Notes: generated by a model not told the origin, from the letters alone. A stretch of 64,000 nt of DNA from IMGVR_UViG_3300043409_000928:1-64000, one strand, 5' to 3'; shown: positions 2,609 to 45,146, counted from the first letter of the stretch. Made by a program: numbers and translations.

Positions 2609-3709
2609 TTATAGGTCCTGGTTAATTTTGGTGGTTTGGCTCTGTCTAAAGTTAGATTTTTCAGGATGGCAGTGTTTAAAGCAGGCAACCAACTGCTGGT
2701 CAGTTCCTTGACTGTTATAAATCCAGTCAAATCCATTGTTGACTATTTGTTTAACTGTGTGATCCGCATTGGCCACTAGGTCAGCTTCTGTTAGGCCAGC
2801 ATTGGTTAATTGTTTTACAAAGTCAGGATAGCGATGGTCAAATGTTTTCTGGAATGACATTATTCCAATAAAGCAACAGGGTGCCACTGACCAGTTACCG
2901 CCAATATAAATCTGTCGAAGGCGTAGGCTATCGCAATTGTTTGCAGGGTCTGGCAATGGTAATGTTTCAACCAGTGGAGCAATTGCCTGCGGTAATTGAC
3001 CGCGTTTTATTGCTGATTCCTTAGACTGTAATTCTCTAACAGGAATGGTTCTGCCAATTTTAACAGGACTAGTTGATGCAGGCTTTAACCAGTGTGTCGC
3101 TTCTCCATTCTTATCTAGCGCAGGTACATTGTCCCTGTCAGTGTGTCTGGCGCTAAATTGTGAGAAGCCTAGTTCAATGGACAGTTGTTTACATGCATCT
3201 ACTTGGTGTTCGTTGTGTTCAAATATTGTCATGGTCCAATTGGCCGTTCCACCTGCTGACATAAATGCCTGTGCATTTTCTAATATTTGATTCCAGTTGG
3301 TTTGTCTGCGGTAAAGATGATGAGTGTCTTCTAGTCCATCAAGTGCAAAGTTAACCGCAGGCCTGAACTGTGCAAGCCTGCGCCACCATTCAGCGGTCCT
3401 TGCACTTCCATTTGTGTTAATTATTATTGACCCACCGGGACTTGCATTGTAAAAGTATTCAACAATTTCCACTGCATCTTTATTGGTAATGAAATCTCCA
3501 ACTGTTCCATTGAGCAGATAGCTTGTAATACCAACAAGATCTTCCGCGGGCAAGTTTTGTTTTACGCTGGACAAGGACCATGTGTCATTGGTTGAAATGT
3601 TAGGATGTTCAAAGTAGCTGGCTGTGGGATACCTGGCACATTGCGGACATACTGAATTGCATAGCGCACTAATTTCCAAGTGCAAGGATGTTATGTCATT
3701 CCATTTCAT
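2609..3709 (-). CDS. Radical SAM protein with C-terminal Cys cluster (SPASM/twitch-like)
   Basis: CNSVCPQC; FALDG; C-terminal C...PCC...CxxxC. Confidence 0.85.
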   Translation of the reverse strand: MKWNDITSLHLEISALCNSVCPQCARYPTASYFEHPNISTNDTWSLSSVKQNLPAEDLVGITSYLLNGTVGDFITNKDAVEIVEYFYNASPGGSIIINTNGSARTAEWWRRLAQFRPAVNFALDGLEDTHHLYRRQTNWNQILENAQAFMSAGGTANWTMTIFEHNEHQVDACKQLSIELGFSQFSARHTDRDNVPALDKNGEATHWLKPASTSPVKIGRTIPVRELQSKESAIKRGQLPQAIAPLVETLPLPDPANNCDSLRLRQIYIGGNWSVAPCCFIGIMSFQKTFDHRYPDFVKQLTNAGLTEADLVANADHTVKQIVNNGFDWIYNSQGTDQQLVACFKHCHPEKSNFRQSQTTKINQDL

Positions 3710-17594: not shown

Positions 17595-17672
17595 TGGTGC
17601 CCCTGCCCCGATTCGAACGGGGATGATTTCTCCTTTTGAGAGAGACGACTTTGCCAATTTGTCTACAGGGGC
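17595..17672 (-). tRNA. tRNA-Leu(CAA), short variable arm
   Basis: CTCAAAA anticodon loop; CCA. Confidence 0.9.
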
Positions 17673-17683
17673 TATATAGTGTT

Positions 17684-18859
17684 ATGTCTTTAAAAGAAAT
17701 AGTTGAAAAAAGAAATGCTTGTAGTATTCCTTGGATACATACCGAAGTCAACCTACAAACAAACGAAATAAAACCCTGTTGTAAGTATCGCGGGGTAAGT
17801 GGTAATTTAAATGACGGCTTAGAATCAGTTTGGAATAACCCAGGTTATCAACAGTTACGGGACGACATTGCCAACGATCGCACACATCCAGCTTGTTCTG
17901 CGTGTGCAGTGCCCGACAATGTGTTTTCTTATAAAAGCTTTAAGAATAAGAATTACATGCCGCGATTGCACCGCATAGATATTGCACAGCCAGCGTTGCC
18001 AGAAATCATTCACATTACATTAAAGAACACCTGTAACTTGGCCTGCAGAATGTGCAGTCCTTATTCCAGCAGTAGATTAAATGAAGTGGCCAATAGAAAC
18101 TCTTTTCTTAAAAGCTTTTATAATTTTAAAAGCGTTAACAATCGTTTTGATTTAAATCAATTAAAAGGATCGTTTATTAATGCTCGTCATTTGACCATCA
18201 CAGGCGGCGAGCCGCTAATGGATAATGATTGCGAACAATTGATTGAAATGGTTCAATTGGAAAGCAGTCAACTAGAAAGCATAGTGTTTTCCACCAACAT
18301 GACTTATATGAATGATGGCCTGTTGGATCGTTTAAATGCAATGCGAATAAAGGTCAAATTAAATGTCAGCATTGATGGTCCAAAACGCATACACGAATAT
18401 ATTCGTGTTGGGTGTAACTGGGACGAGCTGGCAGAAAATCTTTGTCGTTTGCGGGCTCGCTACCCATTTGAATTTGGTATTAACAGTACTATCAGTGCGC
18501 TCAACATTGGCTACATCACTGACCTAATAACTGAAGTAGAACAATTGGGTGAACAAACTGGTGTTGAGTTTGGACATATAATGGCAACTCCTGTGCTAGA
18601 ACCGCATTTACATCCGAGTATATTTGCTTGGTCTGGATTTGCTGACATTTGCTCTGAGTACAAAGATCGATTGAACAGATATTCTACCAGTAGCATAGAT
18701 GGAGCAGATACCTTGATTAAAACAGCACAGGAGTTTTTAAATAGTCCCAGTGGTGATAGTGAACTTTTTAAAACCTTTATCAGCCAATTTGATAGTGTGG
18801 CCATGACTGATGTGCGGGCTGTGTATCCTGAGCTGACTGGATTTTTACCACCACTTTAA
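17684..18859 (+). CDS. Radical SAM protein with N-terminal SPASM/twitch-like domain
   Basis: PCC...CSAC; CNLACRMC; TGGEP; SIDG. Confidence 0.88.
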   Translation: MSLKEIVEKRNACSIPWIHTEVNLQTNEIKPCCKYRGVSGNLNDGLESVWNNPGYQQLRDDIANDRTHPACSACAVPDNVFSYKSFKNKNYMPRLHRIDIAQPALPEIIHITLKNTCNLACRMCSPYSSSRLNEVANRNSFLKSFYNFKSVNNRFDLNQLKGSFINARHLTITGGEPLMDNDCEQLIEMVQLESSQLESIVFSTNMTYMNDGLLDRLNAMRIKVKLNVSIDGPKRIHEYIRVGCNWDELAENLCRLRARYPFEFGINSTISALNIGYITDLITEVEQLGEQTGVEFGHIMATPVLEPHLHPSIFAWSGFADICSEYKDRLNRYSTSSIDGADTLIKTAQEFLNSPSGDSELFKTFISQFDSVAMTDVRAVYPELTGFLPPL

Positions 18860-20154: not shown

Positions 20155-20232
20155 TGGAGTACAGAGTCGGATTTGAACCGACGGCTTTACTGGTTTGCAA
20201 TCAGTTCCCTTGGGCCTCTCGGGCATCTGTAC
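20155..20232 (-). tRNA. tRNA-Cys(GCA)
   Basis: TTGCAAA loop; U73. Confidence 0.93.
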
Positions 20233-20240
20233 ATGTTGAA

Positions 20241-20460
20241 TTTGTTAAAGTAGTGCTACCACATTATAAGCACCATTCACCCGAATTAACAAGCTCGAGC
20301 GGGATTCGGTAAGTTACTTGGGATACCGGGCCAGCGTATAGACCTTTCTACCTCGGACACTACGTGCCCGGGTGGGGATCGAACCCATTTGCCTTCTACT
20401 GTTTTGGTCCTTCGAAGAAACCTAGACAGCGTGACTTTCTCTTGCTAACACTTTAACAAA
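20241..20460 (-). ncRNA. YrlA/Y-RNA-like ncRNA with permuted tRNA-like module
   Basis: Long terminal stem; T-arm > closed acceptor-like stem > D-arm order. Confidence 0.5.
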
Positions 20461-20463
20461 ACT

Positions 20464-20538
20464 TGGCGCCCTGTGATGGAATCGAACCACCATCCTGAGT
20501 TTCGAAGACTCTAATTCTATCCGTTGAACTAACAGGGC
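20464..20538 (-). tRNA. tRNA-Arg(TCG)
   Basis: CTTCGAA loop; CCA. Confidence 0.93.
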
Positions 20539-21173: not shown

Positions 21174-21258
21174 TGGTGGAGTATCCTGGGATCGAACCAG
21201 GCGTGCCCGAAGGCGGCGGATTTACAGTCCACTGCATCACCATTGATGCTTCTACTCC
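21174..21258 (-). tRNA. tRNA-Tyr(GTA)
   Basis: CTGTAAA loop; long variable arm. Confidence 0.93.
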
Positions 21259-21300: not shown

Positions 21301-21368
21301 GTATTAAAGCATACTCGGCTCGTGGCCTTGTCCCCTAAACATTCTAGTTTTGGAATATGCTTTAATAC
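21301..21368 (-). ncRNA. Stem-closed ncRNA candidate
   Basis: GTATTAAAGCATATT...AGTATGCTTTAATAC. Confidence 0.5.
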
Positions 21369-21465
21369 GATCTAATTTTTCCTCCCACAAAAGGGATTCC
21401 ATCCTAGTCGCCGCCCATTTGCCCATGTTTTAAGTGCGGGCTAGGATCTCGTTTCCTACTACACT

Positions 21466-21503
21466 AAAAGAAAAACCCCTGGAGCCTTTCGAGTCCAGGG
21501 GTT
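21466..21503 (-). terminator. Attenuator terminator ahead of tRNA cluster 1
   Basis: AACCCCTGGA-CTCGAAAGGC-TCCAGGGGTT followed by TTTCTTTT. Confidence 0.85.
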
Positions 21504-21523
21504 AAGTAAACGGTCTGATTACT

Positions 21524-21640
21524 TTATCCTGGACATGCTCCTAGAATATGACGATATGACATAAACTTAGAAACGCTGAAGCTTAGGCTCTGTTGTGAGC
21601 ACCAACTTTGTTTCGATATGGATATGGTTTTGTTCATCAT
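21524..21640 (-). CDS. Leader (attenuator) peptide 1, 38 aa
   Basis: MMNKTISISKQSWCSQQSLSFSVSKFMSYRHILGACPG; ATG 7 nt after TATAAT (leaderless); 3' end pairs with terminator arm. Confidence 0.75.
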   Translation of the reverse strand: MMNKTISISKQSWCSQQSLSFSVSKFMSYRHILGACPG

Positions 21641-21647
21641 AGTAATC

Positions 21648-21676
21648 ATTATACACTTACTTAGCCTTTCTGTCAA
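21648..21676 (-). promoter_or_regulatory. sigma70 promoter of tRNA cluster 1 leader
   Basis: TTGACA-17-TATAAT; nested TAAGTA. Confidence 0.85.
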
Positions 21677-22471: not shown

Positions 22472-23617
22472 CTAATTTAAATTAGGCTTTTTGTACTGCA
22501 AGTTTGTCAACGATTGACCCCGTACTTTATCAAGCATGTTGGTGAATTCTAGAAACTTTTCCGGTTGTCCAATGGTGTCTAATTTTTTTAATATATTTGC
22601 CAGTTCCATAGTAATTTTAGATAAGTTGGCGCCTTGGAGAATCTGAATCGCATTATTAATTTCAACTCTGGCTTGGGTTTTCATCTCAGCAGGCAGATTT
22701 TCAAATTTTAACGGTATTGGTGTTGTTGCCACATGCGCTTTAAACTGCAAAGATGGAAACATATCTGACAACGACTGAAAGAATTTTGATGTTGCTGTGT
22801 AGTCTAATAATCCATAGGATGTTATTGTAGAATGAATTGCTACATTTTTAAATTCTTTACAAAATAATAAAGTATTTTTTTCTACAACTGGCCAGTCCGT
22901 TCCGTATCGCACGTATTCTGCTGTTTTTCCCACTGCATCAATGCTTAAATTTAAATGTAAATTTTTAAACTGTTTTAATCTGCCAATGAAGAGAGGGTTA
23001 TATACACTACAGTTGGTAAAGATAAACAACTCAATGTCTTGCTTGCCAATGGATATCAGATAGTCCAGCACATCGTAATATTTTTTAATCAGCATTGGCT
23101 CACCACCAGTTAAAAACAGTCTATCAGTGTCCTTTAATTGTTCAAGTATTTGGTTCCAGTTACTGGTAGAAGTTTCGTAGTCTGAGTCAGAACTAATTGA
23201 AAAGAATTTTGTTAACTCTGGGTTTGCTTCAACTTCTTTTTGCAACATTGAACTAGATTCGGTGTTGCACATTCTACAACTAAAATTACACTGATTACTG
23301 ATACGCAATTCCATCCATTTGGTGCCCAAGTGGTCAGTTGACGTCAAATCAAAATTTTCACATAACTTTGCATATTTTGTTGTGTAATATTTTCTAATAC
23401 TGTGCAGGCCTTTATCTTCTTTTTGCCAACAACTATTACAAGTAGATGGACGAATACCATCTAGAAACTGTTGTTTAATTTCCCGAAGATAATTAGATTT
23501 TATATAATCGTTTGGACTAACTAAAATTTTATCTCGACTGGTACAGCAAAGAGACGCCCGGTTAGATTGATAAAAGAGAGAAAGCCAAGGGGCTGGGCAA
23601 AAGGATGATGAAATCAT
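22472..23617 (-). CDS. Radical SAM protein with N-terminal SPASM/twitch-like domain
   Basis: CPAPW..CC..CNSC; CNFSCRMC; TGGEP; TAAGTA-5nt-ATG. Confidence 0.88.
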   Translation of the reverse strand: MISSSFCPAPWLSLFYQSNRASLCCTSRDKILVSPNDYIKSNYLREIKQQFLDGIRPSTCNSCWQKEDKGLHSIRKYYTTKYAKLCENFDLTSTDHLGTKWMELRISNQCNFSCRMCNTESSSMLQKEVEANPELTKFFSISSDSDYETSTSNWNQILEQLKDTDRLFLTGGEPMLIKKYYDVLDYLISIGKQDIELFIFTNCSVYNPLFIGRLKQFKNLHLNLSIDAVGKTAEYVRYGTDWPVVEKNTLLFCKEFKNVAIHSTITSYGLLDYTATSKFFQSLSDMFPSLQFKAHVATTPIPLKFENLPAEMKTQARVEINNAIQILQGANLSKITMELANILKKLDTIGQPEKFLEFTNMLDKVRGQSLTNLQYKKPNLN

Positions 23618-23647
23618 ACCAATACTTATCGTCGAAGTTACGAGCAA

Positions 23648-28099: not shown

Positions 28100-29581
28100 T
28101 TATAACGACATTAATAGTTGTATGTACTCGGTCAGCCGCTTGTCTTTTGCTGTGACCAGTTCAAAACGAGTCCATTTATTTTTATTTTCTTTTAAAAATC
28201 TATCTTCACTGAATCCAAGTTGAAGTAATTGCAGTATTGACCATGATCCGTGATAGGCATTAGTGGTCAGATTTATCTCCGTTATTGTTTCTTTAAGAAA
28301 TTTGCTAGTTTCTTTAAAACTCCAATAATCGTTATGCCAATTTCCACGATCTTGTTTGATAGGAAAAAAGTAACCGTATTTTTCTTTTTCTTTTTCAAAC
28401 TCACTTGGATTTCGAATCAATGATGTTGTATCGTCGGTAGCCATCATACCCAGGCAATGCCAGGAAATATTGTACAGGTTATTATCATTGAACCAGTGTG
28501 CTGTGCTCTTGATACTTTCTCTAGTGTCACCGGGTAGTCCAATGATAAAACTTAGTGTCTGGTGTATCTTGCCTTTCCAGATATTATGATAAAGTTCTGG
28601 TATATACTCTCGGGCTCGTTTCCCACTCCAACCTTTGCCTATACTGGCCGATGCTTGTTCTCCTAGTGTTTCAATACCATGAAACGTGCTTATCATTCCA
28701 GTTTCTTGCAGTATGTGAGGAACGTCGTCAAATCGCTCCAGTAGGTCGGCTCGTATATAAGATGTAAACTTAATTTTGAATGGTAAACTAGTAATCATGT
28801 CATGCCAAGCTTTCATCTTGTATTCTGTATCGTTGAAAGTGTCGCATATAACGTAGTACAGTTGTGTACCAAAGTTTTCATAGTTACTCAACATCTCTTC
28901 TTTGACCAAGTCAAAGCTTCTAAGGTAGTCTAGCTTTCCTCGACCTAATAATAGGTGATTACAAAATTTACACTTGAAGATACATCCTCGACTTATTTCA
29001 ACTGGTAGTGCTTCGCCTGGTAATATTGCATCTTGTTTGACAAATCTAAAATTGTCAGTTTCAATGTTAAAGTTTTCATGTATTGGTACTGAGTAAACTT
29101 TATATGTTTGACTTGTAATTCTTGTGTTCTCTAATGTATAAGCAGGCTCATCACCGTGTCCTGAGATATGCTTCAGGACATCTACAAATATATCTTCACC
29201 ATATTTTGAAACAACTGAATGAATATTTTGTATTGTTGAGAGTGTCAATCCTGAAAGACCGTAGCCACCAAATATTAATTTTAGATTTGGATATTTTGCT
29301 GTAATGTGATTCAAAGCCAGTGTAAAACTTGCTGTAAATTGCATCTGACCAACGGTAGGTGTAAGGAATGTTGTACTGACACCCAGTACTAATGTGTCAT
29401 TGGAAACAAATTTTTCCAGTGCTGCCACAAGTTGATCATAAGAAAAATAAACCACATGATCAATAACTTGTGCTGTGTATCCGGCTTGCCTTACTGAGTG
29501 AGCAATTTTATATGCGCCCAGAGTACGATACATTGTAATGTTACTAACGTCTGGTCCAGTGTTAAGAATAACAACATCCAT
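28100..29581 (-). CDS. B12-binding radical SAM protein (class B methyltransferase-like)
   Basis: N-terminal B12 domain (GVSTTF, IFGG, GE); SRGCIFKCKFC; GIET; IIGLPGDT. Confidence 0.85.
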   Translation of the reverse strand: MDVVILNTGPDVSNITMYRTLGAYKIAHSVRQAGYTAQVIDHVVYFSYDQLVAALEKFVSNDTLVLGVSTTFLTPTVGQMQFTASFTLALNHITAKYPNLKLIFGGYGLSGLTLSTIQNIHSVVSKYGEDIFVDVLKHISGHGDEPAYTLENTRITSQTYKVYSVPIHENFNIETDNFRFVKQDAILPGEALPVEISRGCIFKCKFCNHLLLGRGKLDYLRSFDLVKEEMLSNYENFGTQLYYVICDTFNDTEYKMKAWHDMITSLPFKIKFTSYIRADLLERFDDVPHILQETGMISTFHGIETLGEQASASIGKGWSGKRAREYIPELYHNIWKGKIHQTLSFIIGLPGDTRESIKSTAHWFNDNNLYNISWHCLGMMATDDTTSLIRNPSEFEKEKEKYGYFFPIKQDRGNWHNDYWSFKETSKFLKETITEINLTTNAYHGSWSILQLLQLGFSEDRFLKENKNKWTRFELVTAKDKRLTEYIQLLMSL

Positions 29582-32058: not shown

Positions 32059-32076
32059 AAAAATTTTATGATTTGC

Positions 32077-32164
32077 ACCATAGAAAAACACACTCAAGTC
32101 CGCGGCACGGAAGGCACTATACCCGCGATGGCTTTTGACCAGGCCTAGTGTGTTTATCTATAGT
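32077..32164 (-). ncRNA. Stem-closed ncRNA candidate
   Basis: ACTATAGATAAACACACT...AGTGTGTTTTTCTATGGT, near-identical stem to 19656-19788. Confidence 0.55.
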
Positions 32165-32165
32165 T

Positions 32166-32273
32166 AGCATATTGAAACACACTATACAACAGGTTTAGGT
32201 CTGCTTCTGTATCCTGCTACGGCCGAGTATGAAGTTATCTCTGGACCTATGCCGTAATGTGTTTTAATATGCT
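32166..32273 (-). ncRNA. Stem-closed ncRNA candidate
   Basis: AGCATATTAAAACACATT...AGTGTGTTTCAATATGCT. Confidence 0.55.
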
Positions 32274-32460
32274 CTGCGAACCCCGGTGGTAATTGTAGTG
32301 CATCCTCTCCCGGGTTACCCCAGTACGACCTCACCTTCCACCCACTTCCCGGCAGGTTCCGTTAACGCATTGCCAGCGGCCTTTTGGTTCGAAGACTACC
32401 ACCCGTGGTTGTCACACCACTTCTCATCCTGCGGGTCACAGTATCCGACGACACTCGGAA
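32272..32460 (-). ncRNA. GC-rich structured ncRNA candidate
   Basis: CTGTGACCC/GGGTTCGCAG and GGTGGTAGT/ATTACCACC long-range stems. Confidence 0.5.
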
Positions 32461-32464
32461 CGTC

Positions 32465-32540
32465 TGGTTGCGGGGCTTGGATTTGAACCAAGGATGGCAA
32501 TGGCTTATGAGACCACGCTGGTGACCAGGCCCTCCCCGCG
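32465..32540 (-). tRNA. tRNA-Met(CAT), initiator-like, aberrant D arm
   Basis: C1:A72; CTCATAA; CCA. Confidence 0.8.
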
Positions 32541-32544
32541 ATTA

Positions 32545-32745
32545 GGATTAAGCTACTGGTTTCCACACCAGCCCTTAAATTGAGCAGTTACTCTGTCCAT
32601 CTCATTTATTCAAAGTCTGTGTGCAGTTGAGATTCTGCCTATCAGAGTCTGCGAGGGTAGTTTCCAGCCTCACGCTTACGGTTTTCTGCCACCGGATCTC
32701 TATCGCTAATCAAACGCTATTTTAACGAAAATAGTAACGGGATAG
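32545..32745 (-). ncRNA. Structured ncRNA candidate, copy B
   Basis: Shares ordered motifs with 29890-30088. Confidence 0.6.
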
Positions 32746-32870
32746 ATGGGCTCAGTTACAAACTGATTTAATGCTCCCTGCTCGGCGTTTTGACTTGCAT
32801 CCTTTTCAGGCTGACCTTCAAGGTCCATTTAATGCGTCCTGCTTTGCGTTCTGGAACCACCCTAAACTCT

Positions 32871-33430: not shown

Positions 33431-33566
33431 ATTATATACGGACAATGCCGTAATGTCAACCGTTTTCTAACTTTCTTTTGTTGTATTTCTACAACAACTT
33501 TCAAACTGTTTCTACTGTATTGCTACAGTATGCCACTAGTATATGCTATCTACTGATTCCTGTCAA
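33431..33566 (-). promoter_or_regulatory. Tandem sigma70 promoters, each with an upstream palindrome
   Basis: TTGACA-17-TATAAT (33431-33459); TTGACA-17-TATACT (33538-33566); TGTTGTATTTCTACAACA at 33479 and 33586. Confidence 0.8.
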
Positions 33567-33607
33567 CAACTATCTGCCTTTATTTTGTTGTATTTCTACA
33601 ACAAACT

Positions 33608-33697: not shown

Positions 33698-33728
33698 AAA
33701 AAAACCCTGGAGTTTTTATTTCCAGGGC
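33698..33728 (-). terminator. Attenuator terminator ahead of tRNA cluster 2
   Basis: CCCTGGA-AATAAAAAC-TCCAGGG-TTTTTTT. Confidence 0.85.
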
Positions 33729-33751
33729 CTGTAATCTCACTATGCGTAGAG

Positions 33752-33817
33752 TTACGGCCTCGGAGTATCCTCTGTGGCTGGTCCTGTATTACCTGGTAAC
33801 AATTTTGCATTTAACAT
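33752..33817 (-). CDS. Leader (attenuator) peptide 2, 21 aa
   Basis: MLNAKLLPGNTGPATEDTPRP; ATG 6 nt after TATAAT (leaderless); 3' end pairs with terminator arm. Confidence 0.75.
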   Translation of the reverse strand: MLNAKLLPGNTGPATEDTPRP

Positions 33818-33823
33818 AGTACC

Positions 33824-33852
33824 ATTATATATCCTTTTAAACAAGAAGTCAA
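33824..33852 (-). promoter_or_regulatory. sigma70 promoter of tRNA cluster 2 leader
   Basis: TTGACT-17-TATAAT. Confidence 0.85.
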
Positions 33853-42955: not shown

Positions 42956-43029
42956 ATGATTCTCCTGTTTCATATAGTATTATAGCACAAATTGGGCAGT
43001 GAAGTCAACCGTTGTGAAAATACAACAAG

Positions 43030-43375
43030 AAGAAACCCGCCGAAGCGGGTTCTGAGTTTCTGTTACGAGGTATGTCTTACCCTAAGTGGCTGTTAGGCCG
43101 CTAATGCGAACTGTGAGTCGTTTGCTTTTACTTTATTTCTTCTTTTTACATCGTTGCTGATGTGCTGTCCACTTGTTTACTTGTTGCCCTGTCGAAACCA
43201 TGACTGGCCCATCAAAAAAGGACTATAAAGAATACTACTATCAGTACGATAGATAGAACTCCACATACGAGTTGATACAGATATTCACTATCCATACAAT
43301 CCCCTTTTGGTGGACCAGGCGGGAGTCGAACCCGCGTCCAGAACACTTTTCTCTTTGCTTCATACAGCAATAACT
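43030..43375 (-). ncRNA. ssrA: Circularly permuted two-piece tmRNA
   Basis: T-arm/CCA piece (ends 43308) precedes GGGCCAG piece (starts 43210); G3-U70; tag ANDSQFALAA at 43093-43125; promoter TTGACC-17-TATACT at 43379-43407; terminator at 43030-43051. Confidence 0.92.
43212..43295 (-). CDS. 27-aa hydrophobic peptide inside tmRNA intervening segment
   Basis: MDSEYLYQLVCGVLSIVLIVVFFIVLF; AAGGGG RBS. Confidence 0.5.
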   Translation of the reverse strand: MDSEYLYQLVCGVLSIVLIVVFFIVLF

Positions 43376-43403
43376 TACAGTATATACTTATTTGATCAGC
43401 AGG

Positions 43404-45146
43404 TCAAATCAATTTAAATAGGCCAAACGCACTGCCATTTTCGTTGCTGTATGCCAGATAGTTGACATTAGAATTTCCTGGAATAGAACTTGAACCAAAC
43501 CAGTATGATGCTCGTTCTTGTTCTGTAACAACTGCCCATGTACCGTCACCATCAATTACTTCGCCATCGCTGTCTCTATTCAGTACCCACTTTTGTGTAA
43601 TTGTAGATTCTGAGTTATACCACCATACTGATTCTGTTGGTACTAGTGGCTCAACAGTTCCTGAATAAATTCTATTCTCTGCGGCAAAGTATATGTTGGT
43701 TCCAAACTCATTTGTAATTCTTCTTTGGTAGCCTTCGTCTCCTGGAATACCGTTTGCATCTTCTAATAATTCTGCTGTTTCGAGTCTGCTCAATCCTTGA
43801 TTGAATTTTACTACCTTGCCATCTCCTCCAATCATTGGTTTCAAATCTGTTCCTACTTTACAAATATAAAATTCTGGAGCAACTGATGCTGGGACTAAAT
43901 TATTGGTTGTATCAAACGAAAATCCATTTAGTTCAGCACTTGGAATTGACAGTATATGATTGTATCCTCTATGCAATGTAATTTCAGGATTCCTGTTTAG
44001 GTAAACATCTTTACGACCATTGACCACTTGTTCACTTTGTACTCCTGTCACAGCCCAACAGTTTCTATCTGCAATCCATACAAAGTTAAAATTTGTCACT
44101 GGAGGATCAATGATTGCTTCGGCTGTGGCATCACCACCATCTTGTTCGTTACCAGAAATTGTGTTTGCGTTATATCCTATGAACTTTCCGCAATAGTCGT
44201 ACAATGGTTCTAGTTGAGCAAAGAATGGATCTTGTGGAGTCAGTGCCGCAATGGCCAAGGCATAAACATCTGGGCCAACAATGCTTGGCCAAATATTATT
44301 ATTTCTTATACCGTTAATATCTGCAGGATAGTTTGCTGTTTTTCCTAGGTTAGATACGATCGACTGTGCTTGTGCTGTTGCATCTTTTAAGTTGGGACTA
44401 TCAATAGGCGGGTATGGAGGATTCCATTTAACAGCGGGCGCAGATGCTATTGTTACTGGCTGTACGTCGGTGGTCTTATACGGCTTGCCAGTTTTTAAAT
44501 TTGTTTTGTGTCTAAAGTCAGGAAACAACTGTCTGTTGATTGATTTGTCAAGTGCTTTCTTAACTCCTTGTAATCTTTTAGTTAACTGGTCAATTTTTTG
44601 ACCTGGAATATTGGCCATCTTCCCGCCGTGCTTTTGAATACTACCAAGTATACTGCTTGGATTGTAAGAACCTGTATTAAGGCCGCCGTCGCCGTTTAAG
44701 CACAATTGTGGTTTTGTCAATCGACCAATGTCATTTAAGATTGCATTCATTTCAGCAAACTCGGCATCAATGATCTGGCTCAACACATCAGGGATTTTTG
44801 GCGCCTTGAGAGGAATTTTACATAGCCCATCTAACGCCAATAAACTTTGCACTTCTGCAATTGCACTGTTTACTCTGCCTAGTATTTCTTTTGCGCCAGA
44901 TAGATCTTCTAGTGCCTTTAACTGATCTTTGATGCCGCGCAGTTCATTTTGTAAATCTTTGATCGTAGGCAAGTCAGTATTTTCAGAAATTAATGCATCA
45001 AGGTCAAGCTTTATACATAACAAAGGACCTTTGAGCATGTTACTAAGACCACCAAACAGTATGGCACATATGATGTCCTTGATTGGTTTGTTCAAGATGC
45101 CTTTGGTCGCAACCTTAACGCCTGGGATAATTGGGATGTCTGCCAT
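43404..45146 (-). CDS. Putative virion structural (baseplate/tail-region) protein
   Basis: Late promoter TAAGTA; context. Confidence 0.6.
   Translation of the reverse strand: MADIPIIPGVKVATKGILNKPIKDIICAILFGGLSNMLKGPLLCIKLDLDALISENTDLPTIKDLQNELRGIKDQLKALEDLSGAKEILGRVNSAIAEVQSLLALDGLCKIPLKAPKIPDVLSQIIDAEFAEMNAILNDIGRLTKPQLCLNGDGGLNTGSYNPSSILGSIQKHGGKMANIPGQKIDQLTKRLQGVKKALDKSINRQLFPDFRHKTNLKTGKPYKTTDVQPVTIASAPAVKWNPPYPPIDSPNLKDATAQAQSIVSNLGKTANYPADINGIRNNNIWPSIVGPDVYALAIAALTPQDPFFAQLEPLYDYCGKFIGYNANTISGNEQDGGDATAEAIIDPPVTNFNFVWIADRNCWAVTGVQSEQVVNGRKDVYLNRNPEITLHRGYNHILSIPSAELNGFSFDTTNNLVPASVAPEFYICKVGTDLKPMIGGDGKVVKFNQGLSRLETAELLEDANGIPGDEGYQRRITNEFGTNIYFAAENRIYSGTVEPLVPTESVWWYNSESTITQKWVLNRDSDGEVIDGDGTWAVVTEQERASYWFGSSSIPGNSNVNYLAYSNENGSAFGLFKLI

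Follow-up and report, generated by a model that had tools for sequence, protein, structure and literature searches.

Structure of the leader upstream of the first tRNA cluster

The stretch of DNA analysed here, referred to below as the window, comprises 64,000 nucleotides (IMGVR_UViG_3300043409_000928:1-64000) of a 285-kb uncultured freshwater jumbo phage contig, and on its - strand, between positions 21676 and 21466, it holds a promoter, a short open reading frame and a set of competing RNA hairpins. The promoter (21676-21648) is a 12/12 match to the sigma-70 consensus, with the -35 TTGACA at 21676-21671, a spacer of 17 nt and the -10 TATAAT at 21653-21648, and it is conserved in five of the related loci recovered below, which are designated by L numbers (L001, L002, L022, L071 and L102). 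Seven bases after the -10 lies the ATG (21640) of a 38-codon ORF, MMNKTISISKQSWCSQQSLSFSVSKFMSYRHILGACPG, which ends at the TAA in 21526-21524. Since the ATG sits where transcription should start, the mRNA is leaderless or nearly so.

The end of the ORF is where the alternative pairings begin. GTCCAGG (21534-21528), inside codons 36-38, can pair with CCTGGAC (21499-21493), enclosing a small inner hairpin formed by AAGTAA (21524-21519) and TTACTT (21509-21504), which is predicted in all folds and does not vary within the subfamily of this unit. CCTGGAC is in turn part of a strong intrinsic terminator (21503-21466, -19.2 kcal/mol), whose 10-bp GC-rich stem is made of the arms AACCCCTGGA (21503-21494) and TCCAGGGGTT (21483-21474), that is, AACCCCUGGA and UCCAGGGGUU in the RNA, with an apical mini-helix and a U tract that runs to 21466. 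The antiterminator and the terminator share six to seven nucleotides and cannot form together. A further strand, UAUUCUAGGA (21548-21539), can pair with UCCAGGAUA as a weak anti-antiterminator; this hairpin forms in the MFE of the full transcript, and in L002 three substitutions all fall in its loop.

When folded, a transcript cut just before the 3′ arm of the terminator adopts exactly the antiterminator that had been proposed in the original prediction (-15.6 kcal/mol locally), whereas with the 3′ arm added it switches to the terminator, and GUCCAGG then pairs weakly with UAUUCUAGGA upstream. Every sequence element quoted in that prediction is present at the stated coordinates, although the GUCCAGG/CCUGGAC pairing alone reaches only p = 0.015 against 2000 shuffles, and in five of the six other sequences of the subfamily its first G is an A with no compensating change. 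It had also been claimed that four of the seven codons not matching the first tRNA cluster fall in the last five codons, and this is correct at the amino-acid level (7 of 38 codons lie outside the amino-acid types of that cluster, 4 of them in the last five), while under strict wobble rules 10 codons are unread by its anticodons.

Genomic context and a second unit

The contig carries ribonucleotide reductase, a DnaB-like helicase, a tmRNA and 30 tRNA genes, all of them on the - strand and arranged in two clusters. Cluster 1 (21258-16821), which starts 208 nt downstream of the terminator, has 18 tRNAs: Tyr, Ser, Trp, Met, Arg, Cys, Met, Lys, His, Phe, Gln, Ile, Trp, Arg, Leu, Ser, Leu and Arg. 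Cluster 2 (33681-29669) has 12: Gly, Glu, Leu(taa), Asp, Met, Ala, Val, Thr, Met, Pro, Gly and Asn. Transcripts that read through the terminator first enter a conserved structured RNA-like element (- strand, 21465-21352), of which at least 48 distinct copies with covarying stems occur in related loci and which has no Rfam match. Between the terminator and tRNA-Tyr there is, however, a separate promoter (- strand, 21295-21267; TTGACA, 17 nt, TAAAAT, with TG), 9 nt upstream of tRNA-Tyr and conserved in L001 and L022.

Immediately upstream of cluster 2 lies a second unit of the same design (- strand, 33852-33698), which we call att2, the first being att1. It has a promoter (TTGACT-17-TATAAT), a leaderless 21-codon ORF, MLNAKLLPGNTGPATEDTPRP (33817-33752), a helix GGCCGUAACUC / GAGAUUACAGGCC that holds the stop codon and ends in the first bases of the terminator, and the terminator itself (CCCUGGA..UCCAGGG followed by U7), with tRNA-Gly starting 17 nt later. 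An exact search for the att2 terminator found one other phage, where it belongs to an ordinary leader with all 20 amino acids, so att2 has no second copy.

A family of related leaders in IMG/VR

Near and distant BLAST of the unit and of a relative against INPHARED found no homologue among cultured phages, and Rfam searches, at gathering and at permissive thresholds, found nothing for the leader, for the downstream element or for 20225-20470, the best matches being His_leader (14.1 bits against a threshold of 49, E = 10) and L10_leader (13.8 bits), with no T-box. Searches anchored on the proteins next to att1 and att2 gave only two non-syntenic relatives. In contrast, scans of IMG/VR anchored on the unit itself, on two tRNA sequences and on an 18-mer of the leader ORF brought about 290 loci from lake and freshwater phage contigs, from which 64 distinct modules were extracted in the first sample and 72 further distinct leaders in the second, which was anchored on the leader. 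One copy sits on a 6-kb contig binned with a Polynucleobacter genome, which is a weak hint as to the host, but fits the beta-type tmRNA.

The ORF is kept in all of these 64 + 72 relatives despite low identity, and gap runs within it are multiples of three in 93 of 127 cases, against 5 of 23 after the stop. In about 25 distinct leaders the ATG lies 6-11 nt after a consensus -10, while others have a short purine-rich 5′ UTR. No Pfam or PHROG family matches the leader. Its conserved peptide motif (an invariant Trp, then DRTPE) coincides with a covarying mid-leader RNA helix, UUGGU/ACCAG plus GCGA/UCGC, so that this conservation may act at the RNA level, and the helix could be a pause hairpin, although this is an inference.

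Covariation of the antiterminator helix

In every module a long-range helix runs from a G-run near the end of the ORF to the C-run that forms the base of the terminator stem, and the stop codon lies inside the 5′ strand or shortly 3′ of it, within 11 nt of its end in most leaders and up to about 25 nt in a few long-type leaders. The sequence of the helix differs between subfamilies, for example GGGUCC / GGACCC, GGGUCUUAGUUAA / UUAAUUAAGACCC, GGGUUUUGGUAAG / UUACCAAAACCC, GUUCGUGUGU / ACACACGAAC and GGGCUUAUUAG / CUAACAAGCCC. In 43 of 64 modules it beats 200 shuffles at p <= 0.01, with mean z = -3.6. As MAFFT alignment of the whole family misaligns the 5′ strand, anchor-based counting and a subgroup alignment were used instead: in a fixed register over 47 distinct helices, positions 0-5 are 89-100% paired, with 3-4 pair types at positions 2-5, and the first 12 positions average 82% paired, against 24-63% for slid controls; on the alignment of 21 sequences, 10 of 15 pairs show changes on both sides, the covariation score being 0.348 against 0.198, and 0 of 500 shuffles reach it. 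The terminator stem also covaries across the family. The contested nucleotides are the bottom G-C pairs of the terminator, which, from what is established of intrinsic termination, are those whose closure is needed to release the transcript. In the att1 subfamily, on the other hand, the shared strand lies deeper in the terminator arm and the helix, whose 5′ strand GUCCAGG is homologous to the GGGUCC-type strand of the family, is shorter (6-7 bp).

Folding with ribosome footprints

The original prediction held that a ribosome reaching the stop codon masks the antiterminator strand and causes termination, while a stall upstream frees it and allows read-through. The 5′ strand of the att1 antiterminator ends 2 nt before the stop codon, so a terminating ribosome must cover it. 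Equilibrium folding with a 28-nt footprint moved codon by codon, the transcript ending at the last stem G, agrees in direction with that inference, although it leaves open whether ribosome position decides which helix forms. In typical relatives the basal terminator pairs have a probability of 0.0-0.2 without a ribosome or with one stalled upstream, which becomes 1.0 when the A site is within the last 7-12 codons. The two copies in the window are among the weaker switches: in att1 the probability is 0.46 in free RNA, ranges from 0.1 to about 1.0 with upstream stalls depending on the codon, and is 1.0 once the A site is within the last 9 codons, while att2 goes from 0.91 (0.4-0.5 with stalls at codons 10-16) to 1.0. 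In addition, in some long-type leaders (L184, L109) a ribosome modelled exactly at the stop codon no longer covers the 5′ strand. Assembled metatranscriptome contigs are thin and ambiguous: one spans the terminator (21428-21550) and another, from a relative, ends at 21457, just past the U tract.

Linkage to tRNA clusters

In the leader-anchored sample, which does not depend on tRNA anchors, 63 of 66 loci with at least 1.5 kb downstream have at least three same-strand tRNAs there, and in 62 the first of these lies within 1 kb, whereas 40 of 56 loci with at least 3 kb upstream have no tRNA upstream. Forty-one chance matches of the same 18-mer in bacterial genomes have no tRNA clusters. In 33 of 60 relatives no consensus promoter lies between the terminator and the first tRNA, and in L041, L171 and att2 the first tRNA follows the terminator by only 7, 8 and 17 nt, where expression of that tRNA requires read-through. 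However, 27 of 60 relatives do have a consensus promoter in that interval, as does the window before tRNA-Tyr, and clusters contain internal promoters, so that the attenuator can control only part of tRNA transcription. In 42 of 64 relatives the terminator is followed by a 50-58 aa ORF of unknown family, without Pfam or PHROG matches, and in most the conserved structured RNA element comes next; in the window this ORF is missing and the element starts right after the U tract.

Amino acid composition of the leaders

The leaders contain all 20 amino acids, in 38-55 residues, far more often than would be expected by chance. In the first sample 29 of 50 do so, against 1.6 expected from the pooled composition of the family itself; after de-replication to 17 dissimilar leaders the count is 8 against 0.7 expected, which no simulation in 5000 reached; and in the second sample it is 63 of 74, with 73 of those 74 having at least 19. 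The rare residues occur about once each but at shifting positions, Cys being present in 45 of 50 leaders across 22 alignment columns and His in 50 of 50 across 16. This is what selection for at least one codon of each kind would give, and not what a folded peptide would show.

In the lineage that includes att1 the downstream cluster is partial, and the leader follows it. L089, L046 and L069 have 16 tRNA amino-acid types, lacking Ala, Asp, Glu and Gly, and outside the structure-constrained last five codons their leaders are made of those types to 100% in L089, where these four amino acids are absent from both leader and cluster, and to 97% in L046 and L069. The window, L001 and L071 have 12 types and 85-91% matching leaders, and att2 is 93% cluster-2 types, while all other leaders score 0.46 on average against that set. 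These codon fractions and permutations were preferred because the presence or absence of each amino acid in the leader against the tRNA set is noisy (odds ratio about 4), as loci are truncated and ARAGORN misses tRNA-Tyr. Counting whole leaders without the start codon, 30 of 37 att1 codons belong to cluster-1 types (P = 1.7e-4) and 18 of 20 att2 codons to cluster-2 types (P = 3.6e-3), and the 2x2 Fisher test of exclusive types gives p = 9e-6. The leucine codons follow the same split, since att1 uses CUA, read by tRNA-Leu(tag) in cluster 1, and att2 uses UUA and UUG, read by tRNA-Leu(taa) in cluster 2. Nevertheless, this co-variation comes from one lineage, that is, two or three independent events, only 28 of 38 att1 codons are read by cluster-1 anticodons under strict wobble, and some leaders with 18 amino-acid types precede only 9-13 visible tRNAs (L032, L039, L070, L011).

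A proposed ribosome-mediated attenuator

The best-supported reading, to which we would give a probability of about 0.65 in the absence of experimental evidence for translation, termination or regulation, is that att1 is a ribosome-mediated (leader-peptide) transcription attenuator at the head of the tRNA gene cluster of a jumbo phage. A strong promoter would start an mRNA at or next to the AUG of the leader, and while RNA polymerase transcribes the next ~60 nt, GUCCAGG could pair with CCUGGAC and sequester the 5′ arm of the terminator, so that polymerase would read through into the conserved structured RNA and the tRNA genes. If a ribosome translated quickly to the end of the leader it would cover GUCCAGG, the terminator would form, and transcription would stop at 21466-21470. 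Slow, stalled or absent translation would leave the antiterminator free and raise tRNA transcription, and such slowing could come from any scarce aminoacyl-tRNA, from a general loss of translation capacity, or from tRNA-cleaving host defences. In most relatives the leader contains all 20 amino acids and precedes an array with tRNAs for nearly all of them, whereas in the lineage of this phage the array is split, and each leader is built mostly from the amino acids of its own cluster.

A bolder and more tentative extension is that large phages carry a pan-amino-acid leader peptide, with about one codon for each of the 20 amino acids, that works as a sensor of the whole aminoacyl-tRNA supply of the cell. 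In this case a shortage of any tRNA, whether through host shut-off, a mismatch in codon usage or tRNA-cleaving anti-phage defences, would stall the ribosome and open the gate to the tRNA array of the phage itself, and when the array is split during evolution, each part would acquire a leader written in its own amino acids.

Alternative explanations

An alternative explanation, which seems unlikely, is that the unit is an RNA-only element in which translation of the ORF would be incidental: either a plain terminator that insulates the tRNA array from upstream transcription, next to a promoter that makes a small stable RNA, or a switch read by a protein, by uncharged tRNA or by RNase III. In its favor, the terminator loop and several helices are conserved as RNA, the att1 and att2 terminators are predicted to form in much of the free RNA, and separate promoters exist for the tRNAs. 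However, the ORF is kept open through extensive divergence with frame-preserving indels, the start codon sits at the predicted transcription start in about 25 distinct leaders, the stop codon is always inside or next to the 5′ strand of the helix, no T-box or other Rfam family matches, and an untranslated RNA gives no reason for the signature of all 20 amino acids.

Slightly less probable is a nascent-peptide arrest sensor of the TnaC, SecM or Erm-leader type, in which the conserved residues would stall the ribosome in response to a specific small molecule or condition and not to tRNA supply. Trp is invariant, and in the main subfamily W-x-x-I-N is followed 9-14 residues later by D-R-T-P-E, which is loosely reminiscent of the arrangement W12...D16...P24 attributed to TnaC. 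Yet the att1 subfamily lacks DRTPE and att2 lacks Trp altogether, the spacing varies, Pro is not the last codon in the main family, the terminator is intrinsic and not Rho-dependent, and the codons of the motif are explained by an RNA helix; this model does not explain the all-20 composition or the tracking of the split clusters either.

It is also improbable that the ORF encodes a functional micropeptide with its own promoter and terminator, for example a RiPP precursor for the nearby radical SAM enzymes (22472-23647, 17636-18859 and 28100-29581), the upstream helix only stabilizing or tuning that small mRNA. The conservation of the ORF, with its invariant Trp and DRTPE-like motif, could mean that the peptide itself matters, but homologues of these radical SAM genes occur in only 3-6 of 63 family loci, whereas a tRNA cluster follows almost every leader, in many members with no promoter in between. 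Furthermore, Cys, His, Tyr and Phe shift position between subfamilies while staying present about once per peptide, which is unlike a folded or modified peptide, the conserved Trp and DR-TP codons coincide with the covarying RNA helix, and no Pfam or PHROG family matches. Finally, a chance combination of promoter, open frame and terminator, which for att1 alone might be entertained (p = 0.015 for the 7-bp complementarity, z = -2.5 for the folding of the whole transcript), is effectively refuted by about 130 homologous units that keep all the components, with covariation.

Comparison with known systems

The proposed mechanism is that of the leader-peptide attenuators of amino-acid biosynthetic operons of Enterobacteria (trpL, hisL, pheL, thrL, leuL, ilvL), with which the unit shares a short ORF in the leader, an intrinsic terminator before the regulated genes and an antiterminator that shares a strand with the terminator and would be masked by a ribosome reaching the end of the leader, and a possible upstream hairpin could play the role of the 1:2 pause structure. 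It differs from them in that there are no runs of one regulatory codon, but instead about one codon of every amino acid, or of the subset served by the downstream cluster, in that the regulated genes are tRNA genes of a virus and not biosynthetic enzymes, in that the mRNA is leaderless in many members, and in the absence of sequence or covariance-model similarity. The pheM leader of pheST likewise appears to sense how well a tRNA is supplied or charged and to adjust a component of the translation machinery, but it would sense a single tRNA species and control a synthetase, whereas here the whole tRNA repertoire appears to be sampled and the tRNA genes themselves are the target. T-box riboswitches are also terminator/antiterminator switches that respond to tRNA status, although they bind one uncharged tRNA directly and need no translation, while here there is a conserved ORF and no T-box signature. 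In the translation-stress attenuators (ermC, cat, vmlR, msr/mef leaders) and TnaC, a ribosome stalled in a short leader ORF remodels the downstream RNA and turns on genes that relieve the stress; there the stall depends on a drug or metabolite acting with a specific nascent peptide, whereas here the composition suggests sensing of elongation over all codon types, and the output is tRNA. Full-text literature searches found no description of a leader-peptide attenuator in front of tRNA genes or phage tRNA clusters.

Implications for phage tRNA genes

Why phages carry tRNA genes, and when they express them, is an old open question. If the reading proposed here is accepted, this would be, to our knowledge, the first leader-peptide attenuator whose target is tRNA genes, and the first whose regulatory codons are the whole code rather than one amino acid, in a design that is compact (about 170 nt) and portable, and that could serve as a natural sensor of translation capacity. 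A translated leader that samples all amino acids and gates the tRNA array would mean that the supply of phage tRNA is under feedback control by translation itself.

Immediately after the terminator of att1, the proposed attenuator unit that precedes tRNA cluster 1, a conserved structured RNA-like element of about 110 nt begins (21352-21465, - strand), of which at least 48 distinct copies occur in related phage contigs; its stems covary, its loops and junctions are conserved (GGAAACGAG, CACUAUAAACA, AAACGGGCGG, GUAUUAAAGCA), and it has no match in Rfam; in some relatives its 5′ part also reads as a promoter of the type TTGACA..TACACT. In 42 of 64 relatives, the terminator is followed, at a distance of about 15-20 nt, by an ORF of 50-58 aa with a Shine-Dalgarno sequence (for example, in the related loci L095:8876-9052(-) and L054:2702-2854(-)), which carries a conserved ...LTxEQxxxLIxxKxxRA... 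motif and belongs to no Pfam or PHROG family. This ORF is absent from the window.

A second attenuator-like unit, att2 (33698-33852, - strand), lies directly in front of tRNA-Gly(gcc) and cluster 2, and its 21-codon leader is made almost only of cluster-2 amino acids. No second copy of this unit was found in IMG/VR, where only its terminator sequence recurs, in the locus L198. Within cluster 2, the hairpin GTTGTAGAAATACAACAAAA is repeated (~33583-33606 and ~33475-33498, - strand), once after tRNA-Gly and once before a promoter, and a similar hairpin precedes a promoter in the related locus L001; it may be a processing or termination signal. The same cluster also contains long stretches (32545-32870 and 32060-32465, - strand) that are led by a promoter but in which there is neither a convincing ORF nor a tRNA, and these may be unknown non-coding RNAs.

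In cluster 1, tRNA-Tyr (21177-21258, - strand; anticodon GTA, with a long variable arm) is missed by ARAGORN and is found only by Rfam, at 33.6 bits; the same gene is often missed in relatives, which biases the tRNA inventories. Between tRNA-Cys and tRNA-Arg(tcg), the stretch 20305-20506 shows a metatranscriptome word depth of 10^3-10^4, against at most about 50 in most flanking bins, and holds a tRNA-like T-arm and acceptor fragment (GGGTTCGATCCCCACCCGGGCAC, about 20395-20365 on the - strand), with no tRNA call and no Rfam match. This depth probably comes from similarity to abundant cellular RNAs.

Four radical SAM genes lie in this single 64-kb window (2609-3709(-), 17636-18859(+), 22472-23647(-), and 28100-29581(-)), one of which has a SPASM domain and sits on the opposite strand, in the middle of tRNA cluster 1. 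In addition, the phage encodes a tmRNA of the beta-proteobacterial or permuted type (43002-43421, - strand), with the tag ANDSQFALAA, and a 6.2-kb contig that carries a full leader module and tRNA-Tyr (L329) is binned in a Polynucleobacter genome; both of these point, if only weakly, to a betaproteobacterial host.
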